64,000 nucleotides of DNA, from the sequence record NC_070958.1. The stretch is one strand, 5' to 3'. A model generated the notes under the pieces. The model did no database searches. It was not told where the DNA came from and saw only the letters and a program-made list of their open reading frames with translations. Positions within the stretch are counted from its first letter, which is position 1. Every line of letters starts with the position of its first letter. Position numbers and translations under genes: made by a program. Below are positions 5,841-60,899 of the stretch, one piece after another.

Positions 5841-6599
5841 ATGAAGACGTACATTATGCTGATCATCGCTATGCTGTTCAGCACCATGGCTAACGCCTCC
5901 GTTGCCACTACGAGTACTAAGTACAACGCTTATGCTCAACAAGTAATGCTGGATCGTTTCGACAGCATCAAAGGTGAGCTTTACGAAGCCTCCATCACGA
6001 CCGGTATCAACATGAACGAGTTGGTTGCTATCGGTTCCCTCGAGTCTAAACTGAAGAACAATGTTCGACCTAAACGTGGAACAGCCCAAGGTGTACTCCA
6101 GTACACCAATTCCACCTGGAAGAATAAACGGAAACAATACGCAGAAGAACTCGGTGTTCCGGCCAATGCCCATCAAACCAATCTCAAGGCCAACTTGACT
6201 ATTGGCGGGAAGGATCTACAGGACACCAAAGCAAGTCTTATCGCTCGCACCCATCTCACTGAAGAAACACTCACCTTAGGTGATGTGTACATGTCTCATT
6301 TCCTGGGAGAAGATGGTGCGGTTAAAGTGATCAATTCGTACAGTCACAAACCACTCAATCAAATTGTGACTTTGCATGCAGGAAACACTTACTATTACAA
6401 GCCTAACGGTCAGGTCCGGACTGCGCGAGAAATGCGGCAGTACATGGATAAACTCGTTAAGGAAGAGTCACGGGTATATGAAGAGGCTATCATGCATTAC
6501 CAAGTAAAGCGGATCTTCTCTCCTGTGCACCAGTTGCTCACCGTCCTCCAGTCCAATCCCGTCAAAGACGTATTGGCTCGGGCGATAGTTCAAAGTTAA
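5841..6599 (+). CDS. Lytic transglycosylase (SLT / phiKZ gp144-like catalytic domain) with signal peptide
   Basis: LVAIGSLES (catalytic Glu), AQGVLQYTNSTW, YMSHFLGEDGA and YYKPNGQVRT motifs; N-terminal Sec signal MKTYIMLIIAMLFSTMANA. Confidence 0.8.
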   Translation: MKTYIMLIIAMLFSTMANASVATTSTKYNAYAQQVMLDRFDSIKGELYEASITTGINMNELVAIGSLESKLKNNVRPKRGTAQGVLQYTNSTWKNKRKQYAEELGVPANAHQTNLKANLTIGGKDLQDTKASLIARTHLTEETLTLGDVYMSHFLGEDGAVKVINSYSHKPLNQIVTLHAGNTYYYKPNGQVRTAREMRQYMDKLVKEESRVYEEAIMHYQVKRIFSPVHQLLTVLQSNPVKDVLARAIVQS

Positions 6600-6658
6600 A
6601 TGGTAACGGGGTTCATGATGATATGGCGAGAACAATCTTTTATCTAAAGGCATTCATC

Positions 6659-6922
6659 ATGACCATTTCTGCTCTGGAATTTCAATGTCAGGTTCATCCT
6701 GATGGTTCGTTGGAACCTGTAAATCATTTCACCGGCAACATCATCACTGTCACTACTAACACCGACGTTAACGGTCAAAAGACCGGTTCCGTTGCTGTGA
6801 TGAACAGTGTGATTGCTTATCTGAGTTATGACTTCTCCGGTAACCGTGTTGTGGGGTACACACCCACTTACGATAACCCGACGGTCATGAAAACCATGGA
6901 GCGCCTCTTCCCGCTTCTTTAA
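6659..6922 (+). CDS. Hypothetical protein
   Basis: ORF in a gene run; ATG 6659 preferred because AAAGG precedes it. Confidence 0.6.
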   Translation: MTISALEFQCQVHPDGSLEPVNHFTGNIITVTTNTDVNGQKTGSVAVMNSVIAYLSYDFSGNRVVGYTPTYDNPTVMKTMERLFPLL

Positions 6923-6948
6923 TTGGAAGAAACTGTAATGAACATACT

Positions 6949-6976
6949 CCTGGGATGGCCGTTTGGTCATCCCAGG
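6949..6976 (+). other. Intergenic RNA hairpin (terminator or processing stem)
   Basis: CCTGGGATGGCC-GTTT-GGTCATCCCAGG 12-bp stem with one G-U pair; only a weak U-tract follows. Confidence 0.5.
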
Positions 6977-7001
6977 TTATGTTTCTTTAGAGGAACTTGA
7001 A

Positions 7002-7169
7002 ATGAAAGTTGAACACGAGGTAACCGAGGTTATTCTGAACTATCACGAGTTTACTATTGTGACAGTGAAGACTCCTAAAGGTTCTTTCCAAATGTCCGTA
7101 ACTGGTCACAACCAACCCAGGGCTAAGACCAGCCGTATGGCAGAATCCATTCTCAAATCAATCAAGTAA
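7002..7169 (+). CDS. Hypothetical protein
   Basis: GAGGA RBS before ATG 7002. Confidence 0.6.
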   Translation: MKVEHEVTEVILNYHEFTIVTVKTPKGSFQMSVTGHNQPRAKTSRMAESILKSIK

Positions 7170-7178
7170 GGAAGTGTT

Positions 7179-7928
7179 ATGCAAATCACCAAAGCAGCGA
7201 GTCAAAACGTTTGTCTCCATAAATCAGAAAACGGTTCAATCCAACTGATCTATCGTCGTTCACGGGACCTGGGATTGCGGGCCTACATCAATCTCACTAC
7301 CAAGACCGAAGATGCAATGGACATTGTCCCCGGTATCTGTGGTAAGACCCGGTACTCTCATCGGATCATCGTCGACTGGTTGACCAGTGAACACAAGAAA
7401 GAAAACTACCCGGTGGAGTTATTTACACTGGTGGCTGAATATCTTTCTCTGTTCAGATCAGATCCTGCTGTCCGTAAAGCAATGAGTCAATCATTGTACA
7501 AAATGTGTGGAGCCTTGGAACGTGATTTCGAAAGATCCCGCATGTTCGGTAAGTCCAAGGGGAACCTTTTCTACAAACTGTGGGAGCAGGAAGTCATCTC
7601 CCTGGACGACACCCCGAACGAAATGGAGTTCTTCCGACTCACTTTCGTCAAAACAGACACCAGCTACAATCTTGGGCTAGACTATCGTGTCCTCAAGGGA
7701 GACAAACCTGGCTGTTATGCAGGTCGCGTCGATCTGTCCAGGAATCCACCCATGGGGATTGACCAAATTTATGCACTGATCTGCAACGGAGTAAAGACCG
7801 TCGAACAGTGGAAACACATTTCTGGTGAGCGAGCTGAAACCATCTTGGAAACCGCTGAGTACAACATGCACACCGACCTTGCTATGTTGGAAGAAGTGAG
7901 CTACCGTCACCAATGTAAACTCATCTAG
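7179..7928 (+). CDS. Hypothetical protein
   Basis: 249-aa ORF with AAGGAAG RBS. Confidence 0.8.
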   Translation: MQITKAASQNVCLHKSENGSIQLIYRRSRDLGLRAYINLTTKTEDAMDIVPGICGKTRYSHRIIVDWLTSEHKKENYPVELFTLVAEYLSLFRSDPAVRKAMSQSLYKMCGALERDFERSRMFGKSKGNLFYKLWEQEVISLDDTPNEMEFFRLTFVKTDTSYNLGLDYRVLKGDKPGCYAGRVDLSRNPPMGIDQIYALICNGVKTVEQWKHISGERAETILETAEYNMHTDLAMLEEVSYRHQCKLI

Positions 7929-7936
7929 GAGTTTAA

Positions 7937-9916
7937 ATGGAAGTTATGCAAGAACTGACCAAATTGGAGGCGTTGATCGCATACCACGATCACATGTTCT
8001 TCGAAGAGGATCGACCCATCATCTCTGATAGTTCGTACGACTTGTTAGTAGCTCGTCGTAAAGAGTTGATGGAAAAGGTACCCGATTATAAACCAGGCCA
8101 CGTACCTGGTTTTGTTCAATCCACCAGTCTCCTCCAGACCGTCAAGTTCCACGAACCGATGCTGTCTGTCGATAAACACAAAACAGGAGAGAGTATCAAG
8201 GCTTGGGCTGCTAAACAGTTAGCACCACTTGGGTTCAGTGATGAAGAGAAGTTGGATGGAGTGGCACTCAGGGCTATCTATGAATATGGAGTCATAACCG
8301 ATATCCATCTTCGTGGTGATGGCGAGGGCACTTCCGTTATCCACCGTCTCCCGATCATGGTTGATATCCAAACGGTGATATCGGAGTTCATGACAGAACC
8401 CAGGGTAGAGGTGACTGGTGAAGCATACGTTACCTTTAAAGATCTGAATGAATACGCCGATCAATGGAACATTGAAAGCGCCGAGTCCAGGTCAACTGTT
8501 AACGGCATGTTGAAGCGTTTGGTGCCTGAAGAATCTGACACCCTCCCGATCAGGTTCAAAGCGTTCCATGCTAGCGAAAACATCCGGTCCAAGTTCAAAA
8601 GTTATCTTGAACTTCGGGAGTATCTCAAGTCGGTTGGATTCGACGTTCCTGTTCTCATCTCGGAAGAGGAAATAGAGTCCATGTTTGACATGACTCGTAA
8701 ACCGGTCGGCGAGTATGCCATTGACGGGATCGTTCGTAAGAACAATGATCTCTCCCAGTGGAATGACCGTCACATGTCTGGTTACTGGACGTATGCCGCT
8801 TGTTACAAGTACCCCACCAACATTTCACAGACGACTTTGTTGGATGTGATTTGGAGCATCAACACGAAAGGGTACCTGGAGGGAACGGTGTTGTACGAAC
8901 CGGTCAAGTATGATGGTTCTATCATCCAACGTGCTCGTTTCAATTACCCTGAACAGTACATCGCTGCCGGCCTGGCTAAAGGGTCCATTATCGAAGTAAC
9001 CAAGGCCAACGAGATCATTCCTTATATGGTGGGGATGTTGACTGCTGGCGATGGAGAAAAGATCAAGTATCCAGAACACTGTCCGATCTGTGAAGACTTG
9101 GTGGAACGTGAAGCCCCGGCAATGTATCGTTGCGTAAACGAGAACTGCCCTGGGGCGTTCCTGACCAGAGCTGAGCGGTTGGTATCTCCCAAGGGTCTGA
9201 ACGTAGCCAGTTTAGGTCCTAAGCGACTCCTGAGATTGATCGACAGTGGTTACTTCAATGAACCCGCTGATCTTTTCAATCTGAAACATCATCATTTCGA
9301 TAATCTCCAGTTCGATAATGGGGTTGCCGATAAGGTGATACGTAGTCTGGAGAAAGCTAAAGGGATCGGTCTGAACAACTGGCTCTATGCGGCCTGCATA
9401 CCGGAACTTGGTTTTACCAGGGCGACAGAACTGGCTAACCAGTTTGGCAAGCGTTATACCAAACTCGACAACTTCATGGAGACCATGCAGAACGGTGAAT
9501 ATCTCCGTTCGCTGTTCAACAGTAAAGATGGTTTGGTTATGGCTGCTTGGGTCGAAAAGAACCATGATGAACTTTACAACTTCCTGGACAAGTACGACTG
9601 GGACTCCTGTAAGGTTCAAGACGGTGACTTGGTACCTATTGGGATCACCGGCTCGTGGAACTACACTCGTGATGAGATGAAGGTTCTGTTGGCCGAGGAA
9701 GGTTTCTTCCTGGATTCCATTTCCAAGGGTGTCAAGGCAGTCCTGGTGGGTGAGAAACCATCACCTTCAAAAGTAAAGAAAGTTGAGAAGTGGAATATCC
9801 CGCTTATCAAACTCGATAAACTCATGACCTTCGATATGTTGATCGCTATCCTCAAAGGCGAAGGAAACGTTATATCTTGGTCACCATCCTCAAAAGTAAA
9901 AGGAAACACTAAATGA
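7937..9916 (+). CDS. ligA: NAD-dependent DNA ligase
   Basis: N-terminal YHDHMF...ISDSSYD domain Ia, adenylation motif EEKLDG, DGIV motif, OB fold, zinc finger CPIC..RC..ENC, HhH repeats and C-terminal BRCT-like ITGS motif. Confidence 0.93.
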   Translation: MEVMQELTKLEALIAYHDHMFFEEDRPIISDSSYDLLVARRKELMEKVPDYKPGHVPGFVQSTSLLQTVKFHEPMLSVDKHKTGESIKAWAAKQLAPLGFSDEEKLDGVALRAIYEYGVITDIHLRGDGEGTSVIHRLPIMVDIQTVISEFMTEPRVEVTGEAYVTFKDLNEYADQWNIESAESRSTVNGMLKRLVPEESDTLPIRFKAFHASENIRSKFKSYLELREYLKSVGFDVPVLISEEEIESMFDMTRKPVGEYAIDGIVRKNNDLSQWNDRHMSGYWTYAACYKYPTNISQTTLLDVIWSINTKGYLEGTVLYEPVKYDGSIIQRARFNYPEQYIAAGLAKGSIIEVTKANEIIPYMVGMLTAGDGEKIKYPEHCPICEDLVEREAPAMYRCVNENCPGAFLTRAERLVSPKGLNVASLGPKRLLRLIDSGYFNEPADLFNLKHHHFDNLQFDNGVADKVIRSLEKAKGIGLNNWLYAACIPELGFTRATELANQFGKRYTKLDNFMETMQNGEYLRSLFNSKDGLVMAAWVEKNHDELYNFLDKYDWDSCKVQDGDLVPIGITGSWNYTRDEMKVLLAEEGFFLDSISKGVKAVLVGEKPSPSKVKKVEKWNIPLIKLDKLMTFDMLIAILKGEGNVISWSPSSKVKGNTK

Positions 9917-10909: not shown

Positions 10910-11611
10910 ATGAACGCCATTGTAATGAAAACTAACTCCTTGGACGGCAACAAAGTGGTTACTCTCCCGGCTATGTCCGACTACCTCACTATCGCCCGTC
11001 ATCTCTATCCCAACGCAGAGATGTTCAATCTGTACCACTGTGTGCATATCGAACTCAAAGAAGCACTCAACGCACTTTTTGACCTGGGGATGGCTTCAGT
11101 GATCATTAACGACCACTTCATCACCGCTACCATGGATGACCGCGGGGTGGTTCGTTGGTCAATTGACAACATCACCTACATAACCGGTGATCTCTTCCCC
11201 GAAGAAGATGATTACAAGAACCTGGAGAACAATGCGTCCCAGGCTTGGAGTCGAGTTTTCACAGCCTGGATGTGCGAAGAACATGCCGAAAAAGACTTCG
11301 TGGAGTTGATCTCTCATTTTGGTGGTATCAAGATGGAGAATTATGTTCCGGATGTCAACCTGAACACACTGTACAGTGAAGTACTCTTTGCAGTGATACG
11401 TTCCGAGAGGTCTGGTGTTACTGAGCTGTCTCTTCCTGTGCGACTCCACAATGCAGAAATCCTTGCAGAGTTGTCCAATATCGACAACACCGGGTTTGTC
11501 TTCAAGGTCTCTCATCCGATGATGGGGTTCCGGACAATTGTTAACATGGGTGGGATGTTCCCGTCCATCGAGAACATGAACGCTTACTGCAAAGCCACTG
11601 AAACCTTTTAA
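10910..11611 (+). CDS. Hypothetical protein
   Basis: 233-aa ORF with AAGGAAA RBS. Confidence 0.8.
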   Translation: MNAIVMKTNSLDGNKVVTLPAMSDYLTIARHLYPNAEMFNLYHCVHIELKEALNALFDLGMASVIINDHFITATMDDRGVVRWSIDNITYITGDLFPEEDDYKNLENNASQAWSRVFTAWMCEEHAEKDFVELISHFGGIKMENYVPDVNLNTLYSEVLFAVIRSERSGVTELSLPVRLHNAEILAELSNIDNTGFVFKVSHPMMGFRTIVNMGGMFPSIENMNAYCKATETF

Positions 11612-11621
11612 GGAGAACACC

Positions 11622-12236
11622 ATGAACTTCAACATTACTGACAAGCAATCCAAAACAGACACCTCTGAAGTCCGTCATATCGTTCTGGAAGCTGACACCG
11701 AGGTCCTGGTTATCGACATGGTCAAGCCTGTCGATAAACGCCGCCATCCGTCCCATATCCCCGTCGATGTCACCGTAAGCGACCATTACGGAAAGGTACT
11801 GATGTCCTATCCCAGCCGGCTTCAGCTCGACTCAGCTCTTATCCAGATCTACACTGAGCTGGAGCTGAAAGTCAAACTCAAGTCCTGCAAAATAGAAGAT
11901 CACGGAACCGTTCTGTTTTCACTCTCGGAAATAGCGATGTGTTTCGGAACCACGCTTACCCCGCATCTTCTCGATATGGAACATGAGTGTGTTCTCCCCA
12001 ACGGTCTGTATCTCGGTGAAAGCGAAGATCATCCGTATCGGATCACCGTCACCCGGAAACACTCTGCTGGTTATGCCGGTGACGTTATGACTACAATCAA
12101 GTCGGAATACACCGGGCTCGCTAACCAAGGAACCACGGTCCGGTCCTACACTCATGTGACCATTCCTACTGAAACCCCACTGACTACCGATGAGAAGTAT
12201 TTCTCGAAACTCCTCGAGTACATCGGAATGAACTAA
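11622..12236 (+). CDS. Hypothetical protein
   Basis: 204-aa ORF with AAGGAG RBS. Confidence 0.8.
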   Translation: MNFNITDKQSKTDTSEVRHIVLEADTEVLVIDMVKPVDKRRHPSHIPVDVTVSDHYGKVLMSYPSRLQLDSALIQIYTELELKVKLKSCKIEDHGTVLFSLSEIAMCFGTTLTPHLLDMEHECVLPNGLYLGESEDHPYRITVTRKHSAGYAGDVMTTIKSEYTGLANQGTTVRSYTHVTIPTETPLTTDEKYFSKLLEYIGMN

Positions 12237-12688: not shown

Positions 12689-12905
12689 CGAAGAAGTGAA
12701 AGGTAATCCCGGCCTGGATATATTTCTGACCAGGGCCGATATCAACCCTGAACTCAGGAGAAACTTGGAGAAACGTATGGAGAAACTCCAGTCGGTGGGT
12801 ACTTACAATCCGAGCTTCTCTATCAGGGCTCCGCAACAACCCAATACCTTGTCAGACGGCACGGAAATCGAGTTTACTGATCTCCTCAAGACTATTAAGG
12901 AGTAA
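12669..12905 (+). CDS. Hypothetical protein
   Basis: ATG 12669 (MFQLLSDEE); the C-terminus GTEIEFTDLLKTIKE is encoded by the 64-bp repeat. Confidence 0.65.
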   Translation: MFQLLSDEEVKGNPGLDIFLTRADINPELRRNLEKRMEKLQSVGTYNPSFSIRAPQQPNTLSDGTEIEFTDLLKTIKE

Positions 12906-12920
12906 GCCAGTTATGTTTAA
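12857..12920 (+). repeat. 64-bp direct repeat, copy 1
   Basis: CGGCACGGAAATCGAGTTTACTGATCTCCTCAAGACTATTAAGGAGTAAGCCAGTTATGTTTAA; 61/64 identical to 13468..13531. Confidence 0.95.
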
Positions 12921-13491
12921 AAATCATGTTCACGATCCAGTTACGAGTAACCGTGAAGTTCCGGAGACCGAAGTAGATTACGCGAAGCGTAAGTTCAAAT
13001 TCCACCGAGAACAGTTCTCGAAGTCCCTCAAAGAAACTTGGCATGATCGTGTGCTCAACATCAGTCTGATGATGGATCAACGAGTTCGTCACAACTTCCT
13101 CAGGGCGAGTAAGCGTCGTCAGAAGAAGATGATCGAACACATGTGTGGGTTCATGGTTGTGTATCACCCGACCACCGGAGAAATAGCTCCGCGCACCCAG
13201 CGGCACAACGGTCCCTATCTCTCTAGGAAAATAGAGTTTGTCGAGGAATTCTTTCCAACTACTATTTACGATCCTGAGCAGTTCAGAGAGTACTACACTC
13301 CGAAAGAAAGTGACCTAACACTCTGCATGCACTTCAACGACCCTAAACGTGAGCCGGAAATAGTCCCGTACACGCCGGGTAATATGAAACGTATCTTGGG
13401 GATTGACCCGAGTTTGACCGGAGTGCCGGATGCGATCTGGATGGAACAAGAAGATCCTGACGCCTCCCGGCACGGAAATCGAGTTTACTGA
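12913..13491 (+). CDS. Hypothetical protein flanked by 64-bp direct repeats
   Basis: Its RBS and start lie in repeat copy 1; its stop lies in copy 2. Confidence 0.8.
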   Translation: MFKNHVHDPVTSNREVPETEVDYAKRKFKFHREQFSKSLKETWHDRVLNISLMMDQRVRHNFLRASKRRQKKMIEHMCGFMVVYHPTTGEIAPRTQRHNGPYLSRKIEFVEEFFPTTIYDPEQFREYYTPKESDLTLCMHFNDPKREPEIVPYTPGNMKRILGIDPSLTGVPDAIWMEQEDPDASRHGNRVY

Positions 13492-13531
13492 TCTCCTCAA
13501 GACCATTAAGGAGTAAACCAGCTATGTTTAA
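13468..13531 (+). repeat. 64-bp direct repeat, copy 2
   Basis: CGGCACGGAAATCGAGTTTACTGATCTCCTCAAGACCATTAAGGAGTAAACCAGCTATGTTTAA; 3 mismatches to copy 1. Confidence 0.95.
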
Positions 13532-14159
13532 TTTTGCACAGAAACACGATATCGAAAAAGATACACTCGAGTTATTGGGTGATACTGATAATGGCAGCAT
13601 GGTCGTACGTGTTAGCGACGCTGGTAAAGGTACCTACGCCAGAACTATTACCATGGAGCTCACCAATCAGGGACAAACCTCTGAGGGGATGATCGAGAAC
13701 CTTCAGCTGTTTCAGAACGACCTGGAAACCATCCCGCTGATCCGCCGTCTCCATCACGGGATCAGTCTGGGTGTTTACTGGATCGGTGACGCTGAACTGC
13801 GTCAGGATATAATCCGTGCTCTATCCGAGTGGTACCACAAACTCAATGGCGATCTGATCGTTGATGAGTACATTGAGGACAGCTGGGGCGAATACACTCC
13901 TCAGATTGAAATGGAATTGGAGTTCAACCGTTCCATTACCTTCCAGTTGGGTAACTTCGACGTAAGCGTAAAGCGTACTGGTGAAGAAGGTTTCATTAAG
14001 GATGTGGTCAAGGTCTCCATGGCGAATGGTCAGGCCAGCATCTGCACTTCGATCGTCAAGGACTGGGGGAAAAACCCGGAAATTCCTTGTAAAGAACTCT
14101 ATGTCTCCATAATTGAAGAACATTTCGGAGCTTTTAAAGTAGAACCTAAAGGAGAGTAA
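13524..14159 (+). CDS. Hypothetical protein
   Basis: 211-aa ORF; its RBS and start lie in repeat copy 2. Confidence 0.8.
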   Translation: MFNFAQKHDIEKDTLELLGDTDNGSMVVRVSDAGKGTYARTITMELTNQGQTSEGMIENLQLFQNDLETIPLIRRLHHGISLGVYWIGDAELRQDIIRALSEWYHKLNGDLIVDEYIEDSWGEYTPQIEMELEFNRSITFQLGNFDVSVKRTGEEGFIKDVVKVSMANGQASICTSIVKDWGKNPEIPCKELYVSIIEEHFGAFKVEPKGE

Positions 14160-52022: not shown

Positions 52023-52056
52023 CCAACAAGAACTAATGTTAACAAAGGAGAAACAA

Positions 52057-52440: not shown

Positions 52441-52449
52441 GGAACTATC

Positions 52450-52947: not shown

Positions 52948-52956
52948 GGAATCATC

Positions 52957-53742
52957 ATGTCAATAGCAAACAAAGAAATCAACATCTTAACCATAAAAGA
53001 TCTCAACAATGAAGTTGGGAGACGCCACCACACCCAAGGGTACAAAATTTCGTTCCCGTTCGTGTCTGGCTGTAACATGACCCTTTTACCATTGCTGGTA
53101 CTTGGGGGTGATCCTGTTAGAGACCTCCGAACTGCAATGGTCAAGATGACCAACGAACCCACTCCAGCCACCTATCACGAGTTTTACATTACTGGTGATG
53201 ATCTGGCTGAAAAGGAAAATCAGGAGTTTATCGAAGAGTGGTTGGGTAAGACTCACGGTTCATCAGGGTTGGGCAGAACCCTATCTGGGGAGGATGATGA
53301 TAAGTTTAACAAGCTCATTGCTCTGGTCGATGAAACCTACGATAAAATTTGTTTTTACCATTCCGGTGAACGAATCTTTGTCTGGGTGAGCTCTTTCAAG
53401 CAGGATTATCCCAATGATACCTTGACAGGATTCGGCAGGTTTGAATACAGATGTTACAGCAGTAGTGCCCTGAAAGCCGCTACCTTTATGGATGATTTCA
53501 ATAACCTCTACGGACTGATCACTGTACTTCCCAAAGGTGCTTTCATAGATGATGGCGGTGTGCTGGTGAATAATAGTGGAAGGTCCATCCATCTCGAGTT
53601 CATCGAGAATGACAAAGAACCGTCCACGGAACAGTACACCAAGGAAGAAGTTGTGAAACTGGTGCGGTTCATCGACAACTCCATTACGGACGAAGAACTC
53701 GAAACACTACTTCGTGTTATGAAGAAGAGGACCGTTTCGTGA
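52957..53742 (+). CDS. Hypothetical protein
   Basis: 261-aa ORF with AAGGA RBS. Confidence 0.8.
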   Translation: MSIANKEINILTIKDLNNEVGRRHHTQGYKISFPFVSGCNMTLLPLLVLGGDPVRDLRTAMVKMTNEPTPATYHEFYITGDDLAEKENQEFIEEWLGKTHGSSGLGRTLSGEDDDKFNKLIALVDETYDKICFYHSGERIFVWVSSFKQDYPNDTLTGFGRFEYRCYSSSALKAATFMDDFNNLYGLITVLPKGAFIDDGGVLVNNSGRSIHLEFIENDKEPSTEQYTKEEVVKLVRFIDNSITDEELETLLRVMKKRTVS

Positions 53743-54140
53743 TTACTCGTCAAACCTTTAAGAACTTGGATGCGGAACTTCCATCGCTTTCAAGCTTCTT
53801 TCTGGCAAACATTCCGTGTGCGGAAGTTAATGGATACTTGGTGATCCAAGCCAATGCTAGGAAGTTTCCCGAGAAACTGCTCATGCTGGCCAGGAAGTAT
53901 CCAGGAATCACGATCCAACACTGCAATGGTAAATTGTTGTTCGGTGGATCATTAGTGGGACCTGGTATCCCTGAAAGAACGGAGAAAAGAGACGGGACGT
54001 TTACGTTTCATATCTCCACCTACCCAGAACTTGCAACACCTAGATTCTGGGCGACACTTTCTATGCTTGCTCAAGCTCAACGTAAAACCTGGGTCACCGA
54101 GTTCACAAGCTACCTAAAACCTGTACAAAACAACTATTAA
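53739..54140 (+). CDS. Hypothetical protein
   Basis: GTGA-coupled; GAGGA RBS. Confidence 0.7.
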   Translation: MITRQTFKNLDAELPSLSSFFLANIPCAEVNGYLVIQANARKFPEKLLMLARKYPGITIQHCNGKLLFGGSLVGPGIPERTEKRDGTFTFHISTYPELATPRFWATLSMLAQAQRKTWVTEFTSYLKPVQNNY

Positions 54141-54150
54141 GGAAAAGATC

Positions 54151-55665
54151 ATGCAAAACACCAAAATGATGAGTGAGAACAAAGACTGGATCGTTTACAG
54201 CAACTACTGGCGCACCACCTCGCGGATCCTTGAACGTATGGGTGGCGAGTACACCAGCCAGGTTGAAATCAATCTGTCCGACGAGAACAACTCTGCCGAA
54301 GCTTTGGCAGAATTGCGTATTCGTCAACATACCACTCCACCGTCCCTCCGTGATGTGATCAGTCACTATTACGAAACTTCTGTCCACGACAAACTGGTTG
54401 AGCTGATCGGACCTGATAAAGCCTGGATCGCTGAGCACTGCAACATCCTCCCGTTCATTGACTGGCCGGAGTATAACCGGAAATGTAATGGTGGGGTCCC
54501 GTTGATCGAGTGTCTGAAAGAACTGGCGCCCCCGGTCCATGCGTACAGTGCGGTGAACGCGGTCAAGTTGAATACGTATCCGACTCGCGAACAGTTCTTC
54601 TACGACTTCGTTCTTGATGAATGGGATCGTGAGCTGGGGCACTTGGAGTTCATCTGCGGTTCCATCATTATGTATGCAGCCGCTTCCGCCAGGTTGTTCT
54701 TCATGTTCAATCCTTCCAGTGAGACATTCCATCTTTTCCTGAAGTGTCGTGACAGTGCTAACGGCAGTGCCCAGGTTATGATGAGTGCCGATTTGGAAGG
54801 TCTCAAGAAGTGGCATGAAAGTACTCGTGGGATGGTTAGCTCGTTCTTCCAGGATGACTACGAAGGGATCTATCCTGATACCGCCATTCTTCAAAAGGGG
54901 ATGACGGATGGGATCAACTACCTGATCTGGAAATACCTGGTCAAAGATGTGATCACTGAGAAACCCAAGGAGATCGAACGTCGTTGGATGATCACTGATC
55001 GCAAGGTAGCTCTCCAGCGTCTTGTGGGCTCCGTGTGTAAGAGTGTTCAACAATTCTACACACCGGACGGCACCCGTTACCGCCAGACCATCAACGAAGA
55101 CCAAATTACCACTTACGAGAAAACCGTGAAGACTGGTAAGGGTCTGGTCAGGACCGAAGTGAACACCCCGATCACTCACAAAGCGTATCTGGATATGTAT
55201 CACGCGCTTGACTGTCCTAAGCCGGTGAATAAGCTCCGTTATGAATACCATCACAAAGGCTATTGTTTTGATGTTGATGTTTACACCGACAACAAGATGA
55301 TCACCGCTGAGCTGGAGTTCAAAACAGTCAAGGAAGCGAAAGAGTTCCATAAGGTACCTGATTGGTTCGGTGAAGAGATCACTGATCTGGAAGGCGTCAG
55401 TAACTTCGACATCTTCAAAACGATCAATGAAAAGCCGAAGGTAACTCTGGAACAACTCACGATGCACATGAAAGGTCGTGAACTTCGTTTTGTTTACAAG
55501 AACTACCGTGGTGATGTAGCCACTCGCCGGGTATCTCGACCGTTCTCTATCAAGTTCGGGTCTAACGAGTATCACGAAGAAGAACAGTGGTTGTTGGAAG
55601 CGTGGGATCTTGACAAGAACCTCCCTCGTGTATTCGCAATGAAAGACATCATCGAGTTTAAATAA
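54151..55665 (+). CDS. Unknown N-terminal domain + CYTH (triphosphate tunnel) domain + C-terminal WYL domain
   Basis: CYTH: KEIERRW, RYRQT, TYEKTVKTGKGLVRTEVN, KLRY, DVDVY, AELEF, PDWFGEEIT..SN. WYL: LRFVYKNYRGDVATRRVSRP...WLLEAWDLDKNLPRVFAMKDI. Confidence 0.8.
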   Translation: MQNTKMMSENKDWIVYSNYWRTTSRILERMGGEYTSQVEINLSDENNSAEALAELRIRQHTTPPSLRDVISHYYETSVHDKLVELIGPDKAWIAEHCNILPFIDWPEYNRKCNGGVPLIECLKELAPPVHAYSAVNAVKLNTYPTREQFFYDFVLDEWDRELGHLEFICGSIIMYAAASARLFFMFNPSSETFHLFLKCRDSANGSAQVMMSADLEGLKKWHESTRGMVSSFFQDDYEGIYPDTAILQKGMTDGINYLIWKYLVKDVITEKPKEIERRWMITDRKVALQRLVGSVCKSVQQFYTPDGTRYRQTINEDQITTYEKTVKTGKGLVRTEVNTPITHKAYLDMYHALDCPKPVNKLRYEYHHKGYCFDVDVYTDNKMITAELEFKTVKEAKEFHKVPDWFGEEITDLEGVSNFDIFKTINEKPKVTLEQLTMHMKGRELRFVYKNYRGDVATRRVSRPFSIKFGSNEYHEEEQWLLEAWDLDKNLPRVFAMKDIIEFK

Positions 55666-55675
55666 GGAGTGCAGG

Positions 55676-56281
55676 ATGTTTAACCGTAAAGAAACCGCTG
55701 AAAAGATCATGGAGCGTCTTCGTTTGATCGTCGTTCCTGGTGGAGATATCTACGTGTACCCTGAAGAGATCGCCTACAAAGTAGGCTCTCATTTCTGTGG
55801 GAAGACCATCACCACCTTCTATTCGAGCGGGAAGGGTTTTCTTGAGTTACGGAAGAGAGTGCTCGAGTTAGCTAATATCGCGGAACAGCCACTGAAGGCT
55901 GTTCCCGTAATTCGGCTACTCGCTCTCAATGAAAAACACAAGGTTGTTTCCAATCCAATCGTCATTCATGATGCCGACACCCCGGAACAACTGTTCGACA
56001 GTTCTATCGCCGTGGCCTGTGCCGAAGCCAGGAAGTATGTTAATGCCAGGGGTGTGTTCGGACGAGTCTTCTTTGAAGAAGTAGAAGACTCGCTTTCCCT
56101 CTTCGCATTGAGCATGGTTCAACGGCGTGTTCCAGGGTTCTCGGTAGGACCCCGTCCCACCAACCCCGGTAAGTCGGTCACTCAGGCCGAGGTAATGTTC
56201 GCCATCGAAAAACTGAAACAGAAGGATGGTCGTGTATCTGCCAACCTTCTTCTCAATCACTTGTTTGGAGTACAGAAATGA
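55676..56281 (+). CDS. Hypothetical protein
   Basis: AAGGAG RBS. Confidence 0.75.
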   Translation: MFNRKETAEKIMERLRLIVVPGGDIYVYPEEIAYKVGSHFCGKTITTFYSSGKGFLELRKRVLELANIAEQPLKAVPVIRLLALNEKHKVVSNPIVIHDADTPEQLFDSSIAVACAEARKYVNARGVFGRVFFEEVEDSLSLFALSMVQRRVPGFSVGPRPTNPGKSVTQAEVMFAIEKLKQKDGRVSANLLLNHLFGVQK

Positions 56282-57345
56282 GTAACGATAACTACATGCA
56301 GGCTCTCAAGCATGCTTTCGAAGTGACCAAAGAGGAACAGGCTGGGAAAGCCACCACCCCTATCTGCCCCACCGGTCATGAATCCTTCATTAACAAACTG
56401 AAGGACGCCCACGCACCGACTCACCCTAGTTACTTCGACGACCTGGATAAGAAAGGTAAAGAAGGTTACATTCCTCCCGCTGGATGTGCGTTTCCTCACT
56501 CGGCACCACACATCCGTCGTTCTGTCAACGGTCTCGATGAATTTCTTTCTGGTCTGGAACAGGAGGAGTCCGAAACACTGCGTGTTGGGTGCCCGGTGGA
56601 TTTCGATGAGGAAGATGCTTTCGACATCGAACTCGACGAGACACCGGAAGAAATGCTGGCCAGGATGGAAGCTCGCGAGAAACGTTGGGATCCCACTCCC
56701 ATTCCCCGAGCGTTGTATGACATCGAACAACTGGTGGAACCGCTCCTGGGTCGTTTACTCGGCGCTGCACGGCACCAACGTGACACCCAGATCGACATGG
56801 GCACTGCGGTATCTCCCGATCCCGCATTCAGTGGTGAACTGGAAGGGTTCCAGGTGGTCATCACTCCGCGACCTTTGACACGCTACATTCAGATCCAGGT
56901 TGGACGCTGCGGCTTCATCAACCATCTGATGGAACCTGGCTGGGAGTTCGGTAGTTTCACTGAAGAAGAGTTGAAAGATACCACTCTCTATCAGTGTCAA
57001 CTCAATCTCTTGAAGAAGCTGTTGGTGGATATGCATTACGGCCTGTCCATCTACCAGCACATCAAGATGGAGGTGTTGGGTCCGATTCTCGAGAAACGTG
57101 ATCACTACGAGATGAAGAAGATTCTTCCTCCCTCTGTTGATTACCGGTTCAAGGGTAACAAAGGTTGCTTCTTCATGTTTAATGGTGAAGAAGTGTTTTA
57201 CAAAGATCGTTCCGTCCATGCCAGGGAGCAGAAAGTGAAGGAGTACGCAAAACTCCATTCTCTGCTGAAAACCGCCATGTTGAAAACGTCGTACATTCCG
57301 CCTTTCATGGTGGATTACAACAGTCCCAAAGTCTTCCGTTATTAA
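56278..57345 (+). CDS. Hypothetical protein
   Basis: ATGA-coupled; GGAG RBS; 355 aa. Confidence 0.8.
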   Translation: MSNDNYMQALKHAFEVTKEEQAGKATTPICPTGHESFINKLKDAHAPTHPSYFDDLDKKGKEGYIPPAGCAFPHSAPHIRRSVNGLDEFLSGLEQEESETLRVGCPVDFDEEDAFDIELDETPEEMLARMEAREKRWDPTPIPRALYDIEQLVEPLLGRLLGAARHQRDTQIDMGTAVSPDPAFSGELEGFQVVITPRPLTRYIQIQVGRCGFINHLMEPGWEFGSFTEEELKDTTLYQCQLNLLKKLLVDMHYGLSIYQHIKMEVLGPILEKRDHYEMKKILPPSVDYRFKGNKGCFFMFNGEEVFYKDRSVHAREQKVKEYAKLHSLLKTAMLKTSYIPPFMVDYNSPKVFRY

Positions 57346-57354
57346 GGAACCATT

Positions 57355-58029
57355 ATGTCTAACCGTTATCAGTTCGCAACCCTTTCCTCCAAAAGCAAAT
57401 TCCTGGGTGTCGTGATGTCTCTTGGCGAACTTGCCTTGGTACAGGAAGTCGCTCTCACTGCTAAAAGTCCCGCCGAAACCGGTTACGACCGTCTTGGGTT
57501 CATCAAGACTCGTTACCCCGAAGTACAGGTGATTGAGGGTGAAGGTAAAGAGACTGTCATCATCGACATCGCCAACGACGAAGTCATGGCCAAGTTCTCT
57601 GACCTCAACTCCGACTTTGGTGGTTTCTTCGGAATCACCAATATCGAGCTGTTCACTGATCGTCTTCGGAACATGGACCGGACCAAATCCAAGGCATCAA
57701 CCGTCGCTGCCAACGAAATGGTCTTCCACGGCAAGTTCAAGCCCTTCCGTAACGCCGCACCATCTGCACCCCATGATGATGGGCTCCGGATATTCAAGGA
57801 GATGAACGCACATCTGGGTCCGAAAATCCAATTCGGTGTTTATGCCTACGACATGCCTGGTTTCAAAGAACCCGTAATGTTCTACGTCGGTTCCAAACAG
57901 GCTCGTCTGAAAGGACACCTGAATATGGCGCAGTGGCGCGATGTCACTGATGAAGAAGGTCTGAAGCTGTTCAACACTCTTCGGACTCCCCTGGCCAGTA
58001 TCGGTCGTACAGCAATGGTGAAGTCGTAA
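57355..58029 (+). CDS. Hypothetical protein
   Basis: AAGGA RBS; 224 aa. Confidence 0.8.
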   Translation: MSNRYQFATLSSKSKFLGVVMSLGELALVQEVALTAKSPAETGYDRLGFIKTRYPEVQVIEGEGKETVIIDIANDEVMAKFSDLNSDFGGFFGITNIELFTDRLRNMDRTKSKASTVAANEMVFHGKFKPFRNAAPSAPHDDGLRIFKEMNAHLGPKIQFGVYAYDMPGFKEPVMFYVGSKQARLKGHLNMAQWRDVTDEEGLKLFNTLRTPLASIGRTAMVKS

Positions 58030-58439
58030 TGAGCTTCGAACGTTCCAAGGATCATGTCCAGGTTTCCTCTATTGGACATGTTAACTTTGGACGTGCGTAC
58101 ATTACGGAAATGGTTCGTAAGAGTATGAAGGTAGGGCTGCTCTATGCAGCCCTTGATAGCATCACACCTAAACGAGTCGATCCGTATTTCGACATGTCCA
58201 AGTTAACCGGTATCCCAGGTCGACTCTGGGAAAGCTACATTCAGAAACAATATCCCTTCTCTTTCTTCGGTAAGGAGTACACCGGACAAAAGGAGTGTGG
58301 GATAACCATCTTGTCCGATGGTGCAATCCGGTACCATGAAACATTCCTGGATAATGAATTAAGCGTTATCCTGAATGGTTCTGTCACCAAACCCAAGGCA
58401 GAACGTATTCTGTTTTACACTGGCGTAAGGAGTGAATAG
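58029..58439 (+). CDS. Hypothetical protein
   Basis: TAATG coupling. Confidence 0.75.
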   Translation: MSFERSKDHVQVSSIGHVNFGRAYITEMVRKSMKVGLLYAALDSITPKRVDPYFDMSKLTGIPGRLWESYIQKQYPFSFFGKEYTGQKECGITILSDGAIRYHETFLDNELSVILNGSVTKPKAERILFYTGVRSE

Positions 58440-58939
58440 TGAAACTACACGAACTGTATCGCAATACCGTTCAGAAATCCAACAGCACTGGTGGCGGTCC
58501 ACTGATGTTGTTCTCCGGGGTGATGAAGAATGGACCCGAGTCCAAATCCAAACTCCCCGGTAAAGTCTTCGGGATCTGTTGCCAGCAGTATGGTGACGAC
58601 GATACCCTGGAAGAAGAATCTGACCTGGCAGCGATCGAGATCGACTCTCCTGTAGCGATCATCCTGGAAGAAAGCCTGATCGTGGATGACTTCGGGGACG
58701 TTCTGAAACTGTTGAGCGAAATCGACAGTGAAGATGCACTCCGGATCGGTTCCGATATCAACAGCGTCCTGGACGTAACCCACACCATGTACCGGTCCAG
58801 TGAGGGTCGTCAGAATGCTCACGTTGGTATCTGGTTGACCAAACTGAGTAAGACCAAACTCCCTGGTGAGTTCGTCACTTGCTCTGGCTCCAGCGAAGAA
58901 GAAGATTTCTTCTACGACGTAACCGACTGTATCAACTAA
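58439..58939 (+). CDS. Acidic hypothetical protein
   Basis: AAGGAG RBS with GTG start; followed by a terminator. Confidence 0.75.
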   Translation: MKLHELYRNTVQKSNSTGGGPLMLFSGVMKNGPESKSKLPGKVFGICCQQYGDDDTLEEESDLAAIEIDSPVAIILEESLIVDDFGDVLKLLSEIDSEDALRIGSDINSVLDVTHTMYRSSEGRQNAHVGIWLTKLSKTKLPGEFVTCSGSSEEEDFFYDVTDCIN

Positions 58940-58942
58940 GTG

Positions 58943-58972
58943 AAGCTCTGGGGTCTTCGGATCCCAGGGCTT
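58943..58972 (+). terminator. Intrinsic terminator
   Basis: AAGCTCTGGGGTC-TTCG-GATCCCAGGGCTT. Confidence 0.8.
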
Positions 58973-58994
58973 TAAGACCCATATCTTTTTAATT

Positions 58995-59012
58995 AGATAT
59001 CATTAACGTGTA
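58995..59012 (+). promoter_or_regulatory. Putative phage promoter motif, copy 9
   Basis: AGATATCATT-aacg-TGTA. Confidence 0.7.
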
Positions 59013-59049
59013 GCAACCAGTTATTACATTTAACTAAAGGAAAGACACT

Positions 59050-59790
59050 ATGAAAAAGATTATTATCGCCACACTGTTCTTCGTCCCGTTCTTCGGTAAT
59101 GCAGCTTCCTTTGACTGTCGCAAAGCGACCACTGTCATCGAGAAGACGATCTGCGAGGACGAAGTTGTCAGCAAGCTGGATGAAGAAGTCGCAAAAGTCT
59201 ACAAGGCGGTTCGTCAGGCTAATCCTGGTGATCAAGACATCATCAACCAACAACGTGACTGGATCAAGTCCCGCAACAAAGCCACCAGTGTTGTGGAACT
59301 GGAAGAGAAACACAGGGACCGCCTGGACGTTCTCAACATCATGCTGAAAGCCTCCAACGAACCCCAGGCTATGAAGCGTGACAACGCCGGTCCTGTTGCT
59401 ATGAAGCGTGGCGATGCTCCTGTGAAAACTCAGGAACAGAAAACCAAGCCGGTTAAGAAAGGCACCATTGCCGAATTGGATGACATGGCCAAGCAGGTTA
59501 GTGAGACTGGCTACTACGTTGACCCTAAAGGTATGAAGTTCGATGGTCGCACTCTGGGTGCAGGCATCAATGGTTTCCCTGGCTGGTGTGCTCAGCGTGT
59601 TAACCGCGTCACCGACACCCTGGTACTGCAAATGGTGAAGACCGATGAAGAACGTGCGGCATTCGTCAAACACAGTTCCATGTTCCGCATCGTAATGGGC
59701 AACATGATGTTGGAAAGCGCCAAGATGACTACCGAGAAAATGGGTGTTCCTTTTGACGCCAACAACTTCTGTTTCAATCTGGACGTATAA
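59050..59790 (+). CDS. Exported LprI/DUF1311-like (lysozyme-inhibitor-like) protein
   Basis: Signal peptide then AASFDCRKATTVIEKTIC...SKLDEEVAKVY...QQRDWIKSRN, the characteristic N-terminal LprI-family pattern. Confidence 0.75.
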   Translation: MKKIIIATLFFVPFFGNAASFDCRKATTVIEKTICEDEVVSKLDEEVAKVYKAVRQANPGDQDIINQQRDWIKSRNKATSVVELEEKHRDRLDVLNIMLKASNEPQAMKRDNAGPVAMKRGDAPVKTQEQKTKPVKKGTIAELDDMAKQVSETGYYVDPKGMKFDGRTLGAGINGFPGWCAQRVNRVTDTLVLQMVKTDEERAAFVKHSSMFRIVMGNMMLESAKMTTEKMGVPFDANNFCFNLDV

Positions 59791-59799
59791 GGAAAGATC

Positions 59800-60189
59800 A
59801 TGAAAAAGATTATTCTTGCGTTGTTCTTTACTTCTTTCTTCGCTGTGGCTGATACCGGTGTCAGTAAGGAAGAGGTTGAAGAGCTGATCGAAGTTGCTTC
59901 CGGTCACGTAACCGAAATCGATATCAACGGTTTCGCCGTCTCCGGGACTTCTATCAATACCACATCCAACAAAGAGTTGCGTAACTGTGCCCAAGCTTTG
60001 GGTTCGCAGTTGATCGCCGACGTCTACCTCAAGCCAGCCCACGAGTATGGGCTTTACGCGGAGCTGACCAACGTCCGTGATGGAGCCAACACCGTTGGTG
60101 CAAATATGGTGATCAATCAGCTCCTGGGGATCTCTGGGTCTGATGAAGTCGCTCTCACTATCTGCAACAAACTTCGGAGCAACATGTAA
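59800..60189 (+). CDS. Exported hypothetical protein
   Basis: Signal peptide MKKIILALFFTSFFAVA; one Cys pair. Confidence 0.75.
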   Translation: MKKIILALFFTSFFAVADTGVSKEEVEELIEVASGHVTEIDINGFAVSGTSINTTSNKELRNCAQALGSQLIADVYLKPAHEYGLYAELTNVRDGANTVGANMVINQLLGISGSDEVALTICNKLRSNM

Positions 60190-60668
60190 TGTTCAAGTAT
60201 CTGTTTGGTAAAATGCGTCTGGTTGACGATCAGGGTGAATCCATGAAGGACGATGTCTTGATGGTCACCAGACGTTGCGACTCCTTCCAACATCGCGAAA
60301 TGGCGCAGAGTGGTAAACTCATTCCTTTCGCCGGTGGGTTCTGTGGTAGCGCCTTGAAACCCGACAACTACTTCCCTGGTCAGTTCAACGGCGAGTCCAT
60401 CTCTTGCCGGGTCAAGACTGATTCCTTTACGGCTGAAGAAGTCAAGAGTGAACTGGAAGAGCACGACATTTATATGTCCGGGCTTTCACCGTGGGAAACT
60501 CATGGTAAGAAGGATAAACTCTATCTGACGGCCATCTTTGTTCCGAAGGGAACCCGGCCCGATAAACCCAGGAATCCTGAGATCAAAGGACCGGACTGGG
60601 TTCTGAAAACTCCGGAAGAATTCTGTTCAGAAATGAAAGAAATCTTCGACGATCCGTATTACTTCTAA
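60189..60668 (+). CDS. Hypothetical protein
   Basis: TAATG coupling; GGAG RBS. Confidence 0.75.
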   Translation: MFKYLFGKMRLVDDQGESMKDDVLMVTRRCDSFQHREMAQSGKLIPFAGGFCGSALKPDNYFPGQFNGESISCRVKTDSFTAEEVKSELEEHDIYMSGLSPWETHGKKDKLYLTAIFVPKGTRPDKPRNPEIKGPDWVLKTPEEFCSEMKEIFDDPYYF

Positions 60669-60677
60669 GGAGCGACC

Positions 60678-60899
60678 ATGCCCATTGTGGAAATCTTTCT
60701 TGGTTTGTTGGCTTTACTGTACCTGTTTATAGGTTGGGAGATTTTCGCACCTATGGGTTGGTACTTCGGTGAGCCGTTCAAACGGACCTGGTATAACAAC
60801 GTGTTATACTTTATCGCATTCCCCACTGCTGTCGTGATGTGGTTGCCGATTCTCGCAGTCATTGTCATTGGTGGGGTGACGTTTAACCGCAAACCGTAA
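60678..60899 (+). CDS. Small two-TM membrane protein
   Basis: AAGGAG RBS; two hydrophobic segments. Confidence 0.7.
   Translation: MPIVEIFLGLLALLYLFIGWEIFAPMGWYFGEPFKRTWYNNVLYFIAFPTAVVMWLPILAVIVIGGVTFNRKP

Follow-up and report, generated by a model that had tools for sequence, protein, structure and literature searches.

Envelope-targeted accessory genes behind early-type promoters in the Aeromonas jumbo phage D6: a possible means of conditioning the infected cell surface

Why would a virulent phage place genes for exported and membrane proteins directly behind promoters of the type that serves its first genes? The question is raised by a 64,000-nucleotide stretch of sequence record NC_070958.1 (the window; positions refer to it unless given as genome positions), which carries ten copies of a promoter-like motif. 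An earlier note, made from the letters of the window alone, held that the genes next to these copies are dominated by exported and membrane proteins and might rebuild the surface of the infected cell. On balance, we lean towards the view that the ten repeats are early promoters of the virion RNA polymerase (RNAP) that drive accessory cassettes of envelope-targeted products, whose collective role would be to condition or guard the infected cell surface.

An 8.4-kb open reading frame on the minus strand is 100% identical to Aeromonas phage D6 (MN131137.2, genus Ludhianavirus, 259,831 bp), and the window corresponds to D6 bases 124001–188000. We compared the whole genomes of D6 and of AerS_266 (Chaoshanvirus, 243,674 bp), thereby testing the claim beyond the window in which it had been made. 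Both phages encode tubulin, a nuclear shell protein (chimallin), phiKZ-like internal head proteins and two sets of split RNAP subunits; D6 is therefore a phiKZ-like, nucleus-forming jumbo phage. Genes were called with a simple caller of our own, which gave 263 genes against 267 annotated coding sequences and agreed closely with the GenBank table inside the window.

A repeated early-type promoter motif

Repeat finding and a pattern search gave exactly ten copies of the motif in the window, the number claimed in the earlier note, all on the plus strand, with TAGATATTAT-type cores starting at 5766, 16840, 19439, 26358, 29740, 31228, 51279, 52004, 58994 and 62325. The consensus is roughly tATa..tTtTcAgatagATATTAt...gTGtaa, with the core ATATTAT, and is specific to D6's phage group. 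The ten belong to a set of 34 copies found by an iterated weight matrix in the whole D6 genome, again all on the plus strand, against 0–1 in shuffled genomes; on the minus strand of the genome the matrix gave no match of 10 bits or more and four weak ones of 6–7 bits. The copies in the window, and a hairpin that separates two of the units they lead, are as follows.

5752–5785, plus strand: early-type promoter copy 1 (weight matrix, 38.2 bits)
16826–16859, plus strand: early-type promoter copy 2 (pattern and weight matrix)
19425–19458, plus strand: early-type promoter copy 3; first gene, 19489–20196, soluble and basic
26344–26377, plus strand: early-type promoter copy 4 (pattern and weight matrix)
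29726–29759, plus strand: early-type promoter copy 5; first gene, 29800–30621, soluble
31214–31247, plus strand: early-type promoter copy 6, kept in phage D3
51265–51298, plus strand: early-type promoter copy 7 (pattern and weight matrix)
51944–51963, plus strand: hairpin between unit 7 and promoter 8 (hairpin search)
51990–52023, plus strand: early-type promoter copy 8; first gene, 52057–52440, soluble
58980–59013, plus strand: early-type promoter copy 9 (pattern and weight matrix)
62311–62344, plus strand: early-type promoter copy 10; first gene, 62374–62847, with a doubtful lipobox (MLAGC)

Three GenBank gene starts (19453, 52018 and 16885) fall within or just at the promoter motif, or precede a more convincing ribosome-binding site and ATG; starts at 19489, 52057 and 16930 fit better.

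The gene for the nuclear shell protein (phrog_4795, E 1e-81) has the best-scoring copy in the genome in front of it, and further copies precede genes for RNAP beta-like subunits at genome positions 35211 and 47868. The weight-matrix scan of D6 found no copy at the genes for the major capsid and sheath proteins or at the RNAP genes of genome 227164–233144. AerS_266 carries the same motif with a similar strand bias (30 copies against 1); there, one copy occupies the syntenic position behind the ribonucleotide reductase gene, and the chimallin and RNAP genes are also preceded by copies. Sites resembling sigma-70 promoters are rarer than in shuffled sequence (12 against 24.9 expected in 16000–35000, and 8 against 17.6 in 49000–64000). 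In the same two parts of the window the ends of units are marked by long perfect hairpins of 12–15 bp, which follow the genes for a 40-residue peptide and an adhesin (both described below) as well as unit 7. A sigma-70 reading of the motif itself was rejected, given this depletion and a separation of only ∼5 nt between its TTTCAG and TATTAT elements.

In a review of jumbo-phage RNAPs, every jumbo phage that encodes an RNAP has a conserved AT-rich motif near −10, detectable from sequence and upstream of early operons. Where transcripts have been profiled, this motif has in each case turned out to be the promoter of the early class (virion RNAP), the non-virion RNAP being encoded by early genes, and the early class is the only promoter class in these phages that can be found bioinformatically (PMC7598289). 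ChmA is an early gene (PMC12908238). Because of its placement at shell and RNAP genes, its conservation across genera, its AT-rich core and the depletion of sigma-70-like sites, we take the D6 motif to be most likely the early virion-RNAP promoter. That it is a middle or constitutive promoter, or another kind of regulatory site, we consider unlikely. Such a reading would suit AR9 and phiR1-37, in which continuously expressed genes have early plus late promoters, and the public runs that carry the D6 sequence are of DNA; however, position, strand bias, AT-rich core, cross-genus conservation and placement at ChmA and RNAP genes all match the early class (PMC7598289).

Products predicted to go to the cell envelope

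Several of the motif-led units encode proteins that are built to leave the cytoplasm, as had been claimed: an adhesin, an outer-membrane barrel, a transglycosylase, an LprI-like protein and small proteins with transmembrane (TM) segments. For six of the ten promoter copies in the window, the first gene was borne out as exported or membrane-bound (5841, 31357 and 59050, with a signal peptide; 16930, with one TM segment; 51327, with two; and 26408). The product of 26408 was unflagged by the TM heuristic and was accepted by eye and by its homology to PDC-M09A; the count is given as 5–6 of 10. The other four (19489, 29800, 52057 and 62374) look soluble. Genes further along the units are also as first described, with a signal peptide on the barrel at 29024 and on the protein at 59800, and two TM segments each in the products of 29493 and 60678. 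The genes and hairpins concerned are listed here.

5841–6599, plus strand: secreted lytic transglycosylase, 252 residues; Sec signal peptide cleaved at about ANA/S, residue 19; gp144-type catalytic domain
16930–17052, plus strand: single-TM peptide, 40 residues (55 from the GenBank start 16885; hydropathy, annotation)
17058–17085, plus strand: 12-bp terminator-like hairpin directly after the peptide gene (hairpin search)
24308–24870, plus strand: two adjacent membrane proteins, of 133 residues (signal peptide or TM segment, and a C-terminal TM segment) and 53 residues (two TM segments), at positions 10–11 of the promoter-3 unit
26408–27418, plus strand: Gly-zipper membrane protein A, 336 residues (PADLOC PDC-M09A, E 2e-15)
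27430–29004, plus strand: protein B, 524 residues, PDC-M40B/M09B homologue with N-terminal HNH-like motifs and two C-terminal TM segments (PADLOC PDC-M40B, E 6e-31)
29024–29482, plus strand: exported eight-stranded outer-membrane beta-barrel, PagP-like, 152 residues (AlphaFold 2 model, pLDDT 91.7; signal peptide)
29493–29723, plus strand: two-TM protein, 76 residues (hydropathy)
31357–34227, plus strand: trimeric autotransporter adhesin, 956 residues; signal peptide at about 1–23, repetitive stalk-like region, YadA-type anchor at 899–956 ending GFEW
34243–34276, plus strand: 15-bp terminator-like hairpin closing the adhesin cassette (hairpin search)
51327–51521, plus strand: two-TM protein, 64 residues (hydropathy)
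59050–59790, plus strand: secreted LprI/DUF1311 protein, 246 residues; signal peptide without a lipobox; phrog_4675, E 1e-44
59800–60189, plus strand: protein with a signal peptide (heuristic call), 129 residues
60678–60899, plus strand: two-TM protein, 73 residues (hydropathy)

The adhesin has what looks like the complete architecture of a trimeric autotransporter. Its N-terminus has a basic start, a hydrophobic core of ∼15 residues and an ATA/A site (a heuristic call). At the other end the Pfam YadA_anchor family (PF03895) matches at 53.8 bits against a cut-off of 22.7, over profile positions 3–60 of 60, and the alignment with the PDB structures of the Hia and YadA anchors extends to the last residue, a terminal Trp. 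The stalk has internal repeats (families D10–D12 and D20) and weak Pfam matches of coiled-coil type; no Pfam family was matched to head or stalk. The gene is monocistronic, lying between its own promoter and hairpin. In the sibling phage D3, which is ∼96% identical nearby, promoter, type of signal peptide, stalk and anchor are kept, and the N-terminal head is wholly different (D3 locus 559–1200 against window 31357–31530). A head swap of this kind is, as far as the two sequences tell, what one would expect of an exposed tip that binds a ligand. The adhesin is confined to four Ludhianavirus phages among 50,697 phage records. Anchor-bearing proteins are present in many virulent phages (phiEco32, 7-11-like and Rak2-like); that of phiEco32, with a signal peptide, a collagen-like stalk and the anchor, is encoded among small genes of the early region. 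That yadA homologues occur in virulent phages away from the tail genes was noted in 2013 (PMC3728262).

The GenBank entry gives the adhesin a note, ‘recognition of host receptor’, the PHROG families matched by its C-terminus are labelled ‘tail’, and its gene adjoins three giant minus-strand genes that resemble fibre or virion genes. It might thus be a receptor-binding fibre of the virion, a reading that we rejected as highly improbable. A classical Sec signal peptide and a full membrane anchor would route the protein to the outer membrane, away from virion assembly in the cytoplasm; the gene has an early-type promoter and its own terminator, on the strand opposite to the fibre-like genes; and the homologues of phiEco32 and the 7-11-like phages are not near tail genes (PMC3728262). 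Because of these export signals and non-tail homologues, the GenBank wording is unlikely to denote a virion fibre. The three giant genes (34301–49302, minus strand; 1069, 2794 and 1074 residues) face the early units from the other strand. In AerS_266 the position of the last of them is taken by a gene whose annotation reads adhesin with a C-type lectin-like fold, and a 25-nt motif (repeat family D6) recurs inside the 2794-residue gene.

For the barrel, Foldseek returned small outer-membrane barrels in general, and its top three matches in the Swiss-Prot part of the AlphaFold database were Legionella PagP (E 1e-5, TM-score 0.55–0.58). The protein matches phrog_3600 (E 7e-30). Searches of Pfam (with any of 33 family members), NCBIfam and the PDB (phmmer and profile) gave no match, and hhalign against E. 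coli PagP gave a probability of 0.3%, which is not significant. Since placement by sequence failed throughout, the label ‘PagP’ in RefSeq and PHROGs is a weak one. In the model the only helix is the signal peptide, and the mature chain begins with strand 1 at residue 22. The family conserves the polar residues S30, H32, N39, N60 and S61 at the outer ends of strands 1 and 3/4. The only segment aligned by hhalign, not significant, puts the near-invariant H32 on PagP His33 and NE on PagP NE; K-N60-S61 resembles PagP K-D76-S77 by eye, with Asn replacing Asp. On this model, we call the barrel PagP-like and not a member of the PagP family. Its own family has 44 representatives in 1.84 billion proteins, most of them from metagenome contigs, and its few named members are all phage. 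It was found in 41 phage records from unrelated families, with Aeromonas, Vibrio and Stenotrophomonas as hosts; they include the T4-like Aeromonas phages 65, 25 and AS-gz, the LAh_6 group, Vibrio phages YC and GR28A and Stenotrophomonas phage IME13.

The transglycosylase matches PDB entries 3bkh and 9xps (E 1e-6) over residues 53–206 (∼155 residues), where its SLES aligns with SIES so that the catalytic Glu-Ser is kept, and the transglycosylase family phrog_4067 (E 2e-36). Its homologue in AerS_266 is likewise the first gene after a promoter. D6 also encodes a gp181-like giant lysin, a second, unrelated cytoplasmic lytic transglycosylase (PDB 9udh, E 5e-26) that follows the virion RNAP genes without a copy of the motif, and a spanin-like pair (a lipoprotein, genome 109642–110094; Rz1-like in AerS_266) in the late structural block, again without the motif. 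Because of these other candidates, the enzyme encoded at 5841–6599 need not be the endolysin of D6.

In the LprI-like protein, the Pfam LprI family (PF07007) matches residues 23–83 at 24.7 bits (cut-off, 22), and the Cys motif near the N-terminus, AASFDC...EKTIC, is conserved. The signal peptide ends ...FGNA/AS, and the first Cys follows five residues later. Homologues were found in 156 phage records, mostly of T4-like phages of Aeromonas, Escherichia and Klebsiella; a word-indexed homologue search gave few matches for this protein and for the barrel. The 129-residue protein encoded next to it (59800) had no family match in the Pfam, PHROG and NCBIfam-type searches that were run. The gene for the 40-residue peptide is, like that of the adhesin, monocistronic and bounded by a hairpin.

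A gp144-type enzyme, small membrane proteins and an LprI-like protein could together be read as lysis control, the first as an exported endolysin, the second as holins and antiholins and the third as a restraint on the muramidase. Indeed, gp144 is the endolysin of phiKZ and its catalytic Glu is kept in the D6 protein, the one- and two-TM proteins are of holin-like size, and LprI is named for lysozyme inhibition. Nevertheless, these genes sit behind an early-type motif and are scattered over 55 kb with no lysis cassette, whereas the spanin-like pair in the late structural block and the second, cytoplasmic transglycosylase do without the motif. We regard lysis control as quite improbable.

The earlier note described the product of 26408 as a glycine-zipper protein. 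That it is a membrane protein holds; together with its neighbour it is better read as a candidate defence pair, PDC-M09/M40. Protein A has a hydrophobic N-terminus and an 85-residue hydrophobic core rich in Gly and Ala. Protein B, encoded on the same strand after a gap of 11 nt, has TM segments at residues 368–393 and 402–423 and, in an alignment of homologues, the invariant residues D111, H112, N141 and N150 (HNH type, D-H...N...N); its neighbours in the protein atlas that carry a Pfam family are GmrSD_C/HNH nucleases, at weak scores. We found 93 bacterial loci with a homologue of B. In at least 37 of the 80 from named bacterial genomes, B is immediately preceded by an A-like gene; jackhmmer started from the D6 protein A alone reached 16 of these 80 loci, and four separate seeds reached 42. 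Three loci (L017, L018 and L019) have the A–B arrangement of D6. The A of L018 fits the PDC-M09A model at E 4e-90, and its B fits PDC-M40B and the C-terminus of M09B; in L019, which holds the closest bacterial homologue of B, the upstream A is 27% identical to that of D6 over 334 residues (E 1e-13). BLASTP of the D6 protein A against the other two of these three upstream partners was not significant, and the link comes from the PADLOC models and the third partner. Bacterial copies adjoin McrBC, WYL regulators or, in an Aeromonas genome, an integrase with PDC-S33. In the phage records the pair is confined to the same four Ludhianavirus phages as the adhesin. An integrase-bounded island of Aeromonas allosaccharophila (locus 2255–9614) carries a solo PDC-M40B homologue with no A upstream, beside genes for a RelA/SpoT-like PDC-S33 and an H-NS-like protein.

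Gene position, accessory cassettes and the case for a programme

Membrane and exported genes cluster along the D6 genome, with 14 adjacent pairs against 5.4 expected (p 1e-4), and they make up 20% of the genes in promoter-led runs, which may contain genes with extra internal promoters, against 5% of the remainder (p 0.0005). They also make up 25% of the genes that have no homologue in AerS_266 (accessory genes) and 7% of those that are shared (p 1e-4). First genes are not significantly more often accessory in D6; among accessory genes, the first position is nevertheless richer in envelope proteins (8 of 17 against 20 of 94, p 0.03). Over the whole genome, 10–11 of 33 first genes (30–33%) are membrane or exported, compared with 28 of 230 others (12%, p 0.003–0.01) and with 17% of the later genes in the same runs (p 0.04–0.08). 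A loose first rule for signal peptides had wrongly flagged proteins such as dihydrofolate reductase; the rules used here were stricter, and results were taken at several stringencies. Our reading is that envelope-directed proteins characterise the accessory genes in blocks led by early-type promoters, and that any extra tendency to sit first is modest and not yet robust. Outside the window, further dense clusters of small TM proteins and proteins with signal peptides lie at genome 190682–195284 and 245065–248776; the latter has six such proteins consecutively, with two promoter copies within.

Several points weigh against a surface programme. The strong contrast in the window (5–6 of 10 first genes against 7 of 61 others, p 0.002–0.01) is post hoc, since the window was the earlier reader's own pick. 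Outside it, which is the fairest test, the figures are 5 of 23 against 21 of 169 (p 0.18), and in AerS_266, whose homologous genes are not independent data points, 5 of 29, one of them chimallin and a false call, against 21 of 222 (p 0.16). The anticipated enrichment of first positions thus stands at about two- to threefold for the whole genome and is not significant in either of these two samples, and ‘dominated’ was too strong a word for a third of the first genes. Signal peptides and TM segments were called by a hydropathy/AXA heuristic of our own and not by SignalP or DeepTMHMM. The public sequencing runs that were searched contain the sequence of D6 as DNA only, so that early timing is assigned by analogy. 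The envelope proteins are heterogeneous and have no demonstrated common pathway. The LprI match is just above its threshold, in a domain whose function is known for one mycobacterial member only, and the sequence link of the barrel to PagP is weak. PDC-M09 and PDC-M40 are candidate systems, for which the literature gave one bare mention and no published test was found. Finally, an early secreted muramidase would seem dangerous to the phage unless controlled.

Some of these points suit a simpler account, that there is no programme and that the pattern is a by-product of genome architecture, with moron-like accessory cassettes of unrelated function at the edges of early operons. We give it a real, though lesser, chance of being the whole explanation. 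It fits the excess of envelope proteins among accessory genes, the hairpin-bounded, monocistronic genes for the adhesin and the 40-residue peptide, the restriction of the adhesin and the A/B pair to four related phages, and the failure of the first-position effect to reach significance beyond the window or in AerS_266. Against it, the first position remains richer when accessory genes alone are considered, the secreted transglycosylase is promoter-proximal in both genera, and several units hold two to four consecutive envelope proteins, which suggests functional grouping. Architecture probably accounts for much of the position effect: the tendency to sit first is probably due largely to accessory genes arriving, or persisting, as self-contained cassettes of promoter, gene and terminator. 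Early remodelling of the surface, or exclusion, is a plausible role for the products of such cassettes, by analogy with phages in which these roles are established.

Further observations concern duplication and repeats in D6. A direct repeat of 64 nt, at 12857–12920 and 13468–13531 and with 95% identity, covers a gene end together with the following gene start; it marks a tandem duplication of the neighbours 12913–13491 and 13524–14159. At genome 9226–9408 (minus strand) and 10926–11633 (plus strand), divergent genes have identical first 25 residues (MTLARAFIERII...), which points to sequence duplicated in inverted orientation around the tRNA region; of the two, the right-hand gene comes first behind a promoter copy. 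Window 1–2073 is the end of a 6.1-kb gene, D6_0119 (‘putative chitinase’), made of 75-nt (25-residue) repeats. At the corresponding position AerS_266 has a gene annotated as a BspA-family leucine-rich-repeat surface protein.

Proposed roles and comparison with known systems

How might such a set of proteins act? The motif, the cassette boundaries, the export signals, the folds and the homologies are observed, and the scheme below is built on them by inference. With timing taken from the promoter class and localization from the targeting signals, we envisage that the injected virion RNAP would transcribe the motif-led units after injection and that its promoters, besides serving nucleus and polymerase genes, would drive short accessory cassettes that are often bounded by a terminator. 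Sec would export the transglycosylase, the LprI-like protein, the 129-residue protein, the barrel and the adhesin. The beta-barrel assembly machinery (BAM) would insert the barrel and the adhesin anchor into the outer membrane, and the small TM proteins and the A/B pair would enter the inner membrane. The surface of the infected cell might thereby be guarded soon after infection, with rival phages excluded and wall and outer membrane kept under control.

Individual roles can be suggested by analogy. Imm of T4 is a small membrane protein, like the 64–76-residue two-TM proteins of D6, which may block DNA entry in the same manner. In the periplasm, Spackle inhibits the tail lysozyme of incoming phages (PMC7677548), and the LprI-like protein may similarly inhibit the tail muramidases of later phages. 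The T5 lipoprotein Llp blocks the receptor (PMC9586334); the barrel and the adhesin might alter or mask receptors in a comparable way. Protein B, tethered to the membrane, could attack incoming foreign DNA with its HNH-like domain, while the phage's own genome would lie inside the early vesicle and then the nucleus (PMC12908238). For the transglycosylase a role is hardest to suggest: it might weaken the wall, either as the cell enlarges or to let the adhesin assemble, or be held back until lysis.

A narrower form of this proposal would make the set a weapon against rival phages: a captured A/B system whose membrane-anchored, HNH-like nuclease would attack DNA as it crosses the inner membrane, a lipid-A-altering barrel from the same operon, a periplasmic tail-lysozyme inhibitor of LprI type and a rapidly diversifying autotransporter that would change the binding properties of the infected cell's surface. 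All would be expressed within minutes, which the phage could afford because its own DNA is sealed first in the early vesicle and then in the protein nucleus. We offer it tentatively, as rather doubtful in so specific a form. The broader proposal, that early-type promoters of D6 drive cassettes whose products condition or guard the surface, is the one that we carry forward.

Work on chimalliviruses has centred on the cytoplasm, that is, the early vesicle, the nucleus and the spindle, and keyword searches of a review and a preprint returned no mention of phage-made envelope proteins. If an early regulon rebuilds the cell surface, this would be a new layer of chimallivirus biology. It would also bear on Aeromonas phage cocktails in aquaculture, since an infected cell that excludes phages affects how the members of a cocktail interact. 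The barrel represents a phage-specific, PagP-like family common to unrelated Aeromonas phages, and the A/B pair provides, in a virulent phage, a natural setting in which to learn what PDC-M09/M40 does.

Part of this is already known, namely early envelope proteins, yadA homologues in virulent phages and the label ‘PagP’ in RefSeq and the literature. The earlier note held envelope proteins to be unusual for a non-lysogenic phage, which is wrong in view of T4 Imm and Spackle, T5 Llp and the yadA genes of virulent phages (PMC7677548, PMC9586334, PMC3728262), and of a barrel and an LprI-like protein that are common to dozens of T4-like phages. New here are the finding that a chimallivirus brings such parts together behind a single class of promoter, the overall architecture of the adhesin with its head swap, the definition of the barrel family with its PagP-like motif, and the recognition in a virulent phage of a bacterial candidate defence pair.

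The D6 promoters share with the early promoters of phiKZ, AR9 and phiR1-37 a conserved AT-rich motif of ∼10 nt, recognizable from sequence, upstream of early operons (in D6, probable ones) that include the non-virion RNAP; they differ in a motif sequence that is specific to the group. The transglycosylase has a catalytic domain homologous to that of the phiKZ gp144 endolysin (PDB 3BKH), with the catalytic Glu-Ser. However, gp144 has an N-terminal peptidoglycan-binding domain, in place of which the D6 protein has a Sec signal peptide (the match begins at gp144 residue 100), and the D6 gene lies behind an early-type promoter. The LprI-like protein agrees with LprI/DUF1311 (PF07007) in a domain above the Pfam threshold, the N-terminal Cys motif and an export signal. 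Mycobacterial LprI is a lipoprotein, whereas the D6 protein has no lipobox, has lost the second Cys pair and has an extra C-terminal region of ∼150 residues without a known family.

The barrel is eight-stranded and has a signal peptide, as PagP does, and its SYH...NE and K-N-S line up, partly by eye, with TWH(His33)...NE and K-D76-S77. Unlike PagP, it has no N-terminal amphipathic helix in the mature protein, has Asn in place of the catalytic Asp76 and is ∼30 residues shorter. OmpX/Ail/Lom and the TM domain of OmpA are small outer-membrane barrels to which it bears a general likeness. The D6 pair and the PADLOC systems PDC-M09/M40 share the order of two genes, a Gly-zipper A followed by an HNH-like B with TM segments, and both proteins match the models. 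In contrast to the bacterial copies, that of D6 is in a virulent jumbo phage, behind a phage early-type promoter and followed by the barrel and a two-TM gene; it also lacks the WYL regulator that some bacterial copies have.

Among trimeric autotransporters, those of the Eib group are prophage-borne. With YadA and Hia, phiEco32 gp119 and the proteins of Salmonella phages FSL SP-058 and SP-076, the D6 adhesin shares a signal peptide and, at the C-terminus, a YadA anchor whose last residue is aromatic, with a long repetitive region between them that may serve as the stalk. The phiEco32 protein is of ∼230 residues with a collagen-like stalk, compared with 956 residues in D6 and a head without a family match. 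Unlike these yadA homologues, the D6 protein is encoded by a nucleus-forming jumbo phage, behind what is most likely a virion-RNAP promoter, and its head varies between D6 and D3.

The T4 proteins Imm and Spackle and Llp of T5 are the closest functional precedents, being products of early genes of strictly lytic phages that act in the envelope of the infected cell. They were not returned by the family and structure searches of the D6 proteins, no direct comparison being made, and an exclusion role for the D6 set is proposed by analogy with them. Relative to this T4 and T5 set, D6 has in addition an autotransporter, an outer-membrane barrel, a secreted transglycosylase and a membrane protein with HNH-like motifs.

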